From assembly GCA_002269645.1 (NCBI GenBank), contig NIVC01002242.1:1-64000 (forward strand): a stretch of 64,000 nucleotides of DNA, read 5' to 3'. Positions 30,301 through 33,300 of this stretch are shown piece after piece (position 1 is the stretch's first letter; each line of letters starts with the position of its first letter). Under the pieces are notes generated by a model that worked only from the letters and a program-made list of their open reading frames with translations, searched no databases and was not told the DNA's origin. This DNA is from Macrostomum lignano (lineage: Eukaryota). The position numbers were made by a program, and so were the translations under genes.

Positions 30301-33300
30301 TAGGAGATGGGGATTAGCAATTCCTAGAGTCGGATTAGGGAGGAATCGGGCTTAGGAGATGTGGATTAGCGATTCCTAGAGACGGATTAGGGAGGAGTCA
30401 GGCTTAGGAGATGGGATTAGCGATTCCTAGAGTCGGATTAGGAAGGAATCAGGCTTAGGAGATGGGGATTAGCAATTCCTAGAGTCGGATTAGGGAGGAA
30501 TCAGGCTTAGGAGATGTGGATTAGCAATTCCTAGAGTCGGATTAGGGAGGAATCAGGCTTAGGAGATGGGGATTAGCAATTCCCAGAGTCGGATTAGGGA
30601 TGGATCAGGCTTAGGAGATGGGGATTAGCAATTCCTAGAGTCGGATTAGGGAGGAATCAGGCTTAGGAGATGGGGATTAGCAATTCCCAGAGTCGGATTA
30701 GGGATGGATCATGCTTAGGAGATGGGGATTAGCGATTTGCAGAGTCGGGTTTAGGGATGAATCGTGATTGGCACAGGATGTGGACTACCAGAACATTGCA
30801 AGTTGCTCAACCATCTGCAGGGGGCGACACGGACGGTGGCTCAGGCAAAAAGTCTAGCGTCAACGTCAAGAAGCAGTCGTCAGAGTCTTCGAAAAGACTT
30901 CCGAACGGTAAGACACGGGTTCATTTATCTTGGCTAAAGTGAATTCGATTTGAAAATTATAAACTGCCACCTGTTCAACCATTCCAGACGAGGCTGTGCT
31001 CAGCGCCGAAACGACCAGGGAGTTGAAAAGTATGTGTCGCGTGCGAGAAAATTACTTTTAAATAATTTTTGGTTAAGCCTTGCACTGAGCTGCCCAATAG
31101 GAAACTAAGTGTGTCCATCTTTCGTAATCCAATACTGAAATGCACTTAGCGATTCAAAGTTGAGAAAAGTGCACATGAGTGGTTTAGCAGCAGAATTGAC
31201 ATAGTTTGTACTTATAAGTTGATCTGACGTTTTCGACTCTCATCTGCCACTATCTCTCATTCCCTCTCTTATCTGCCATTCTGTCTCTCATTCCCTCTCT
31301 TATCTGCCATCATCTCTCTCATTCCCTCTCTTATCTGCCATTCTGTCTCTCATTCCCTCTCTTATCTGCCATCATCTCTCTCATTCCCTCTCTTATCTGC
31401 CATTCTGTCTCTCATTCCCTCTCTTATCTGTCATTATCTCTCTCATTCCCTCTCTTATCTGCCATTCTGTCTCTCATTCCCTCTCTTATCTGCCATTCTC
31501 TCGCTCATTCCCCCTCATCTGCCATTCTCTCTCTCTCATTCCCTCTCTTATCTGCCATTCTCTTTCTCATTCCCTTTCTTATCTGCCATTCTCTCTCTCA
31601 TTCCCTCTCTTATCTGCAATAATCTCTCATACATCGATCAAGCCAGTCCCCAAACCGACCTCAAACTCACAGACGTGCTCATCTACAATCCCAAAACCGA
31701 ACTCAAACTCACAGACGTGCTCATCTACAATCCCAAAACCGAACTCAAACTCACAGACGTGCTCATCTACAATCCCAAAACCGAACTCAAACTCACAGAC
31801 GTGCTCATCTACAATCCCAAAACCGAACTCAAACTCACAGACGTGCTCATCTACAATCCCAAAACCGAACTCAAACTCACAGACGTGCTCATCTACAATC
31901 CCAAAACCGAACTCAAACTCACAGACGTGCTCATCTACAATCCCAAAACCGAACTCAAACTCACAGACGTGCTCATCTACAATCCCAAAACCGAACTCAA
32001 ACTCACAGACGTGCTCATCTACAATCCCAAAACCGAACTCAAACTCACAGACGTGCTCATCTACAATCCCAAAACCGAACTCAAACTCACAGACGTGCTC
32101 ATCTACAATCCCAAAACCGAACTCAAACTCACAGACGTGCTCATCTACAATCCCAAAACCGAACTCAAACTCACAGACGTGCTCATCTACAATCCCAAAA
32201 CCGAACTCAAACTCACAGACGTGCTCATCTACAAGCCCAAAACCGAACTCAAACTCACAGACGTGCTCATCTACAATCCCAAAACCGAACTCAAACTCAC
32301 AGACGTGCTCATCTACAATCCCAAAACCGAACTCAAACTCACAGACGTGCTCATCTACAATCCCAAAACCGAACTCAAACTCACAGACGTGCTCATCTAC
32401 GGCCCGGCAATCGTGCTGCAGGGCGAGCAGTTCGTCTCGTTCACCTGCACCGCTACATTCCGTGGCCGGGACGCCCGTCGGAATCCCGACGCCTCGGTGG
32501 AGTGGTACCACCTGGGCCTCCGCCAGGTGAGCAATGCCAGCAGCATGGACATCAGCATGAGCTGGAAGGATGGCGACACCATCGTTAGCGTACTCACCAT
32601 TTACTCGGTCCGGTTCGAGCATTCTGGCGATTGGGTCTGCTTGAAGCAGCCGAGCGAAAAAAGGCCACCGGCTCTCGAGACTGCAAGTCACCAACTCACT
32701 GTGCTGGGTGAGCAGTCTATGGCGGATTTACAAAAGAAAGAAAAACCCATTGTTCTACCAATAAGTTTCAGGTTCATTGTCTATTGAAATTATCCCTTTG
32801 AGTCTTTGGTAATAATCTCCTTTCATTGATTTCGAGAATGTTCTCCCCACTGATTCTGGGAATAATATCCCCATTGATTTCGGGAAGAGTCTCCACACTG
32901 ATTTCGGGAAGAATCCCCTCATTGATTTCGGGAATAATCTACCCATTGATTTTGTGAAGAATATTCACATTGATTCTGGGAATAATATCCCCGTTGATTT
33001 CGGGAAGAATCTCCCCATTGATTTTGGGAATAATCTCCACATTGATTTTGGCAAGAAGCTCCACATTGATTTTGGAAATAATCTCTCCATGGATTCTGGG
33101 AAGAATCTCCCCATTGATGTTGGGAATAATCTTCCCATTGATTCTTGGAATAATCTTCCCATTGATTCTTGGAATAATCTTCCCATTGATTCTTGGAATA
33201 ATCTTCCCATTGGTTCTAGGAATTATCTCCACATTAATTTTGGGAGAAGAATCTCCTTACTGGTTCGGAATAATCTCTCCATTAATTTTGGGAATAATCT

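Follow-up and report, generated by a model that had tools for sequence, protein, structure and literature searches.

The window analysed here is a stretch of 64,000 nucleotides (nt) of contig NIVC01002242.1, and it carries on its plus strand a gene for a putative protein with two immunoglobulin (Ig) domains, Ig1 and Ig2. The intron before the Ig2 exon ends in a 42-bp tandem array that repeats the acceptor together with the first nucleotides of the exon. This array is an extreme but expected case of a tandem repeat engulfing a splice site in a minisatellite-prone genome. A preliminary description, made from the sequence alone, had instead proposed it as a possible generator of protein isoforms with linkers of variable length between the two Ig domains. 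The gene was compared with two loci of the flatworm Macrostomum lignano, L001 (NIVC01000104.1) and L002 (NIVC01001095.1). Unmasked tblastx between the window and M. lignano was swamped by matches of repeat to repeat, and the arrays were masked for the comparison of exons. The gene model, with a slash marking each boundary between exon and intron, is as follows.

28028-28185, plus strand: exon Ig1a, first half of Ig1 with the B-strand Cys (..VVIRCVVRNLGKHV), acceptor ttccag/GC, donor CATGTG/gtgagt; from masked tblastx against L001 3822-3953, 66% identity.
29596-29809, plus strand: exon Ig1b, second half of Ig1 (VTWMKNDG...YLCQVNT...QLVVR), phase-1 donor AGAG/gtgcga; 75% identity to M. lignano.
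30821-30907, plus strand: putative linker mini-exon A, 87 nt, phase 1-1, ctgcag/GGGGCGAC...CCGAACG/gtaaga, encoding (G)GDTDGGSGKKSSVNVKKQSSESSKRLPN; from comparison with M. lignano.
30988-31029, plus strand: putative linker mini-exon B, 42 nt, phase 1-1, ttccag/ACGAGGCT...TTGAAAA/gtatgt, encoding (D)EAVLSAETTRELK; from comparison with M. lignano.
31030-32386, plus strand: intron ending in the array, 1357 nt; from the exon model.
32387-32707, plus strand: exon Ig2, (N/D)VLIYGPAIVLQGEQFVSFTCTATF...HQLTVL, phase-1 donor CTGG/gtgagc; 68% identity to M. lignano.
34668-34870, plus strand: putative last exon, ttttcag/AATGGG.., Gln-rich with an Ala-rich hydrophobic C-terminus, TAA at 34868-34870.

The preliminary description had taken the gene to encode a two-Ig, Dpr-like protein, and this assignment is borne out by the domain and structure matches. 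Pfam finds Ig domains (Ig_3, I-set and ig) in both of the exons that it had named, and for Ig1 also V-set. Among solved structures in the PDB the best match is Dpr4 (E = 8e-13), followed by DIP-alpha (1e-11), with Dpr6 (4e-9), other DIPs, C. elegans RIG-5 and ZIG-8 and vertebrate IgLONs also matched. All of these matches are confined to Ig1, which contains the motif DSGEYLCQVNT and with it the core (Cys ... W ... DxGxYxCQV) of Dpr/DIP/IgLON-like members of the Ig superfamily (IgSF). Dpr and ZIG-8 have two Ig domains, and DIP and IgLON have three. The gene resembles this group ('Wirin', with ZIG-8 and RIG-5) in its best structure matches, in its two Ig domains and, in M. lignano, in a signal peptide and a hydrophobic tail; it differs in that only Ig1 matches and in an atypical linker of 44-52 amino acids (aa) drawn from two mini-exons. 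The label 'Dpr-like' therefore seems a fair one. The only homologue of the Ig exons among 5.8 billion proteins is the M. lignano model P0001. This model and P0003 are truncated, and the full-length version, P0002, which comes from the second M. lignano locus, has both the signal peptide and the hydrophobic C-terminal tail. A first (signal-peptide) exon and an unambiguous tail of the glycosylphosphatidylinositol type were not identified in the window, where the tail is a weak Ala-rich stretch and the putative last exon aligns weakly to that of M. lignano. The gene appears functional, with all six recognised exons undamaged and bounded by canonical splice sites, a conserved core of Cys and Trp and 55% identity to M. 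lignano.

The linker between the Ig domains, of about 44 aa, is encoded by the two mini-exons and is poorly conserved, that of M. lignano being about 8 aa longer. Mini-exon A has its counterpart at L001 11198-11308, which belongs to both P0001 and P0002 and matches in order, in phase and in its ..SK.L.N end; the counterpart of mini-exon B lies at L001 11391-11438 and shares the DE start and the K end before the junction codon N. Residues common to the window and M. lignano are SK(R/S)L(P/L)N-DE over the junction of A and B and K-N before VLI(Y/F)G, and both mini-exons have canonical AG and GT sites. As the GenBank annotation of M. lignano derives from a genome-guided transcriptome assembly (PMC5730564), the mini-exons are probably transcribed in that species. 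The earlier gene model had joined Ig1b directly to Ig2 and so skipped these two conserved mini-exons. With both of them present, the donor that faces the array is 31029/31030, at the end of mini-exon B, rather than the phase-1 donor at 29809 to which all repeated acceptors had been said to splice in frame. The donor at 29809 is real, and since 31029/31030 is also of phase 1, the argument from phase and frame still holds.

The features of the array and of its neighbour in the same intron are these.

31647-32400, plus strand: 42-bp tandem array of 18 copies; from Tandem Repeats Finder (TRF), a copy-by-copy listing and a 21-mer count.
31671-32386, plus strand: 18 AGs in identical context, spaced every 42 nt.
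32234-32235, plus strand: T>G at 32235 (copy 15), the array's sole internal variant; from the copy listing.
32385-32386, plus strand: exon-proximal acceptor, homologous to the M. lignano acceptor; from comparison with the M. lignano junction.
32387-32400, plus strand: true start of the Ig2 exon, the last 14 nt of the array; from the copy listing.
31237-31628, plus strand: unrelated pyrimidine-rich 31-bp minisatellite, 12.7 copies, in the same intron; from TRF.

The array runs head to tail with a period of 42, 18.0 copies, 99% matches and 0% indels (TRF score 1487). Each unit consists of 28 nt of intron tail (..AACTCAAACTCACAG, ending CTCACAG) and the first 14 nt of the Ig2 exon (ACGTGCTCATCTAC), so that TRF and the copy listing confirm the unit as first described. 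The junction 21-mer CTCACAG/ACGTGCTCATCTAC occurs exactly 18 times, with 42-nt spacing throughout and no occurrence in the window outside the array (0 expected from dinucleotide shuffles), and the G of each repeated AG falls at 31672 + 42k, from 31672 and 31714 up to 32386. Translated in the exon frame the unit reads (D)VLIYNPKTELKLT without a stop, and every one of the 18 AGs is in frame with the phase-1 donor. The arithmetic given earlier is also correct: the period is a multiple of three, and 0-17 extra units could be added, the largest possible insert being 17 x 14 = 238 aa. Copies 2-18 are identical at all 42 nt apart from the T>G at 32235, which turns AAT into AAG, replacing N by K in the exon frame, and gives rise to an additional AG. 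Copy 1 departs from the consensus at 3 of its 28 intron-part positions, and a diverged copy 1 beside a homogenised interior is the usual picture for an edge copy. The internal AGs share an identical context from -42 to +14, including a branch-point-like yTnAy motif (CTCAT) that lies 33 nt before the next AG, within the exon-derived part of the preceding unit. Two more AGs (caAGccAG; 31642 and 31646) lie 30 and 26 nt 5' of the first repeated AG, the former in frame with the Ig2 exon and the latter out of frame, and they bear on the possible location of the ancestral branch point.

A comparison with orthologous and paralogous loci, suggested in the preliminary description, finds a single acceptor and no such array in M. 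lignano. At L001 the counterpart junction reads ccccacag/ACGTGCTGATATTC, with an unrelated 15-bp array that ends 41 nt upstream, and L002 has the same structure with one acceptor at its Ig2 junction. The 42-bp unit is similar to this single-copy junction (p = 0.0005, shuffle-tested local alignment), which indicates that the 14 exon-derived nt of the unit go back to ancestral exon sequence. The array was thus born from the splice junction, as had been supposed, in the lineage of the window and after its split from the M. lignano locus. A dispersed satellite that landed at the exon was considered and rejected, since the window has the motif only within the array and the unit shares homology with the M. 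lignano junction. We also rejected the idea that mini-exon B, whose length is likewise 42 nt and which has GTGCTCA in common with the unit, is an exonised copy of older date: its alignment to the unit is at shuffle level (p = 0.22-0.41), and mini-exon B and the junction are not significantly similar within M. lignano (p = 0.66). The shared length and the shared GTGCTCA would be a coincidence.

The uniformity of the array suggests that it is either young or actively homogenised, because at 99% it is the most uniform array in the window that is not a microsatellite (76-96% in the others). Direct evidence that arrays of this kind turn over fast comes from the two M. lignano loci, which are 97.6% identical over 10 kb and have identical coding exons and protein, yet differ in the copy numbers of the same arrays (32 in L001 and 67 in L002 for a 12-mer, 95 and 73 for an 11-mer, and 38 and 28 as well as 50.5 and 47.5 for two more). 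Tandem arrays are also generally prone to errors in assemblies, so that the array or its copy number might owe something to mis-assembly or polishing. However, unique flanks anchor the array, which has a diverged edge copy and one internal variant, and it resembles dozens of neighbouring arrays as well as those of the M. lignano loci. An assembly artefact is thus very improbable, and at most the copy number would be wrong.

The array stands in surroundings that are full of others. Thirty arrays of at least 150 bp, with unrelated units of 4-86 bp, occupy 27% of the window, rising to about 40% in its gene-rich first 42 kb, and arrays make up 40% and 45% of the two M. lignano loci, which agrees with published statements on that genome. 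Every intron of the gene except the 80-nt one holds one or two arrays next to a non-array part of 219-872 nt. In the intron 31030-32386 only about 300 nt lie outside the 31-bp and 42-bp arrays, the former ending 18 nt 5' of the latter. From the non-array length of each intron and the unit lengths we made a back-of-envelope estimate that random seeding would place about 0.94 junction-spanning arrays in the gene, and one such array therefore needs no special explanation.

Elsewhere arrays end 41-113 nt before acceptors, as they do before exon Ig1b, mini-exon A, the last exon, an exon of a Staufen-like gene and the M. lignano Ig2 exon, as though roughly the final 40 nt of an intron were protected from them. 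If this spacing of at least 41 nt reflects selection against invasion, the array might be harmful: its 17 extra acceptors would act as decoys that disturb splicing, through the out-of-frame AGs at 31646 and 32235, exon skipping or intron retention, and the gene would be a hypomorph or a future pseudogene. Many identical decoy sites and two nearby AGs out of frame would fit such a state. On the other hand, none of the six recognised exons is damaged, their splice sites are canonical and Cys and Trp are conserved, and the authentic last copy retains its full ancestral context. We regard a seriously harmful array as improbable.

Splice sites are duplicated elsewhere in this gene family as well, as at the donor of exon Ig1a.

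28185-28288, plus strand: repeated Ig1a donor motif GGTGAGTTCGG at 28185, 28249 and 28278, with a variant GGTGAGTTTGT at 28229; from a motif search.

Four matches to this motif with at most one mismatch are found in the window, three of them here, versus 0.53 expected, and the exact repeats of the donor (G/GTGAGTTCGG) lie within a G-rich stretch. Translation that continues past the first Ig1a donor runs into a TGA ahead of the second exact copy, and use of the variant would shift the frame, so only the exon-proximal donor could yield the conserved protein. The second case is the Ig2 donor of M. lignano, TGCTGG/gtgagatgggatg, which recurs 21 nt downstream in the same frame, with no stop (L001 13021-13060), the duplicate sitting at the very start of a GATGG-type array. 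The same duplication is present at L002 (near 25370), and models P0001 and P0002 both use the exon-proximal donor. Junction duplications are thus recurrent in the gene family, with the exon-proximal copy used or usable in both cases that can be checked.

Taking these observations together, we infer that the 42-bp array is an ordinary by-product of minisatellite formation, neutral or slightly harmful, and this is the account that we somewhat favour. The segment from -28 to +14 of the 3' splice junction before the Ig2 exon would have been duplicated in tandem and then expanded to 18 copies by slippage or unequal exchange, in the same process that would have filled almost every intron here and in the M. 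lignano loci with unrelated arrays. The last AG (32386), which adjoins the real exon and lies 321 nt from the next donor, would be the ancestral acceptor and is, on balance, the one that we expect to be mainly used. The 17 upstream copies would then leave with the intron, and the protein would consist of Ig1, the linker of about 44 aa and Ig2. Leaky use of upstream AGs, at 14 aa per unit, is plausible because they are in frame and have the same local context, and it would be noise. Several points weigh against this account. The identical context from -42 to +14 gives the last copy no sequence advantage, and a linker that is poorly conserved and differs by some 8 aa from its M. lignano counterpart might tolerate extra length. 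In addition, this array is unusual in covering its acceptor, whereas the others halt 41-113 nt short, and the two analogous duplicated sites are donors, not acceptors, for which the rules of copy choice may differ.

In a rival account the repeats would be translated. In this case the first AG (31672) or other upstream AGs would be the main acceptors, and up to 17 copies of DVLIYNPKTELKLT (238 aa) would stand between the linker and Ig2, the array being a coding tandem repeat of variable number. All 18 AGs are in frame without a stop, and the scanning model has splicing occur at whichever AG comes first downstream of the branch point selected (PMC1431707), which could favour an upstream site, as could the CT-rich 31-bp array just 5' of copy 1. 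The native linker is long as well as poorly conserved, and human segmentally duplicated genes often retain boundary repeats in alternative transcripts (PMC2812944). The open frame, however, is uninformative: all three sense frames of the unit are open, as is one antisense frame, and 11 of the 30 arrays in the window have a period divisible by three. We therefore rejected an open frame with such a period as evidence of coding. There is also no signal in the balance of synonymous and non-synonymous changes, the sole internal substitution being the non-synonymous N to K, which is too little variation to reveal one. The AGs at 31642 and 31646 precede copy 1, the second of them out of frame, and use of the first repeated AG would lengthen the exon from 321 to 1035 nt.

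In an AlphaFold2 model of the 345-aa first-AG product, made from the single sequence, the repeats form regular 9-residue beta strands with 5-residue turns at a predicted local distance difference test (pLDDT) score of about 90, and Ig2 has a pLDDT below 35. Confidence on perfect repeats without an alignment is unreliable, however, and a Foldseek search of this model against the PDB gave no match at E <= 0.001. Each unit is hydrophobic and contains another copy of DVLIY, with which Ig2 begins; the repeat peptide is, at most, beta-prone rather than linker-like, and the extra copies bearing DVLIY might interfere with the folding of Ig2. A search with the repeat peptide found no match at E <= 10 among 5.8 billion predicted proteins, including transcript-derived ones, which is uninformative or at best a weak negative, as the species of the window seems absent from them. 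We consider a coding repeat of this kind rather unlikely, and the same holds for a protein whose length varies with the allelic copy number; main use of the upstream AGs is similarly doubtful. Most of the probability left beside main use of the last AG and main use of the upstream ones falls to a substantial ladder, in which several acceptors are used.

In its fullest form such a ladder would be an evolved device, in which regulated or stochastic choice of acceptor, together with allelic copy number, tunes the distance of Ig1 from Ig2 or the membrane. An in-frame ladder is possible in principle, the gene belongs to the Dpr/DIP/IgLON-like recognition group, and the length of the linker already differs between the window gene and that of M. 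lignano. However, the copies are identical, so that only length could vary, and no regulatory element sets one copy apart from another. The array is absent from both L001 and the paralogous L002, it resembles the many neutral arrays around it, and with its 99% uniformity it is young or homogenised without a sign of selection. As one of about 30 arrays, with a period and frame at chance level, it offers nothing in support of the variable-linker generator first proposed, and we hold that proposal to be highly improbable. Scarcely more probable is a state in which several in-frame acceptors are used appreciably while copy number varies between alleles, so that Ig1 would be carried on a beta-rich spacer of 0-238 aa and selection could act on length. 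If true, it would be a diversity mechanism based on length only and derived from a minisatellite born at a splice junction.

Repeats at splice junctions have precedents. Human genes in segmental duplications have tandem repeats across exon-intron boundaries, which may either remain in the transcript or be removed by splicing (De Grassi & Ciccarelli 2009; PMC2812944). The array described here is like these in that its unit spans the boundary and multiplies a splice site, and in being young and presumably variable in copy number. It differs in comprising 18 near-perfect in-frame 3' splice sites, in belonging to a flatworm and in being known from genomic sequence alone; moreover, arrays here arise genome-wide and not only in duplicated genes. 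It is also like the arrays of the M. lignano genome (2017; PMC5730564), which have different units of 11-86 bp, extend over hundreds of bp and fill introns, and differs from the other arrays examined in that it takes in the acceptor along with 14 nt of exon. Alternative splicing patterns can likewise arise when a segment with a splice signal is duplicated in tandem, and a unit that is a multiple of three keeps both in frame (2010; PMC2891723). In contrast to such duplications and the origin of introns from them, no new intron arises here, as the array repeats only the acceptor and its unit has no donor. A paper by Zhuo et al. (2007) reportedly treats the 'Modern origin of numerous alternatively spliced human introns from tandem arrays'.

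With NAGNAG and other short-distance tandem acceptors, several in-frame AGs are in competition for a single donor, and the choice among them adds or removes codons. Such acceptors are also mentioned in PMC2891723. The array shares with them several in-frame AGs that face one donor, with whole codons gained or lost, whereas its AGs lie 42 nt apart and not 3-12 nt, each with a complete upstream context to itself instead of a shared scanning window, the sites number 18 rather than 2 and the arrangement is not conserved at the M. lignano orthologue. The cassette exons of Dscam1 are comparable only in the broad theme of an IgSF recognition protein with many potential isoforms: its alternatives are diverged, conserved and mutually exclusive and provide different binding surfaces, while the units here are identical and unconserved and could change length only. 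A literature search for experiments with long tandem acceptor duplications found nothing direct, only general rules of scanning and AG exclusion. As boundary repeats and the duplication of splice signals are already documented (PMC2812944, PMC2891723), the array is a new and rather extreme example of them.

For the annotation of macrostomid genomes the array is a warning, in that gene predictors may pick any of the 18 equivalent acceptors and thereby invent a repeat protein of 238 aa, and short RNA sequencing reads cannot separate the internal copies. It is also a natural experiment in the choice of 3' splice sites, with 18 identical sites that differ in position alone. Were a polymorphic ladder real, it would show how the linker of a neuronal recognition protein can come to vary in length through a neutral repeat process, although nothing here supports one.

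The arrays of the window are themselves diverse. Between positions 1 and 42000 there are about 28 different minisatellites and microsatellites of 190-1410 bp, or about one per 1.5 kb; the microsatellites of the window include (TTAG)177 at 3647-4355, (ATCT)119 at 26112-26588 and (TGTC)73 at 11263-11558. The part from 44000 to 62000 is AT-rich, with a G+C fraction of 0.31-0.41 versus 0.41-0.54 on the left, and holds almost no tandem arrays. A 20-bp array (GTGTCAGACAGAGCGCACAG) at 9233-9713 reaches to about 10 nt from a putative start codon (MSEPRPEL..), and a long open reading frame (ORF) spans it into the following exon, the downstream part of which encodes the start of an RRM domain (ELAV-like; Pfam RRM_1, E = 6e-7).

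Other genes are recognisable in the window. The Staufen-like gene (dsrm and Staufen_C domains) occupies 38074-43732 on the minus strand, and its introns 38318-39392 and 40303-41201 consist almost wholly of arrays. An ORF at 1277-1639 has an unconfirmed forkhead-like wing motif, KGNYWALDP, and no Pfam match at E <= 0.001, and a Gly/Arg/Pro-rich ORF at 56844-57431 has no Pfam match. An exon of an ENY2 gene lies at 51380-51766 (Pfam EnY2, E = 5e-35).

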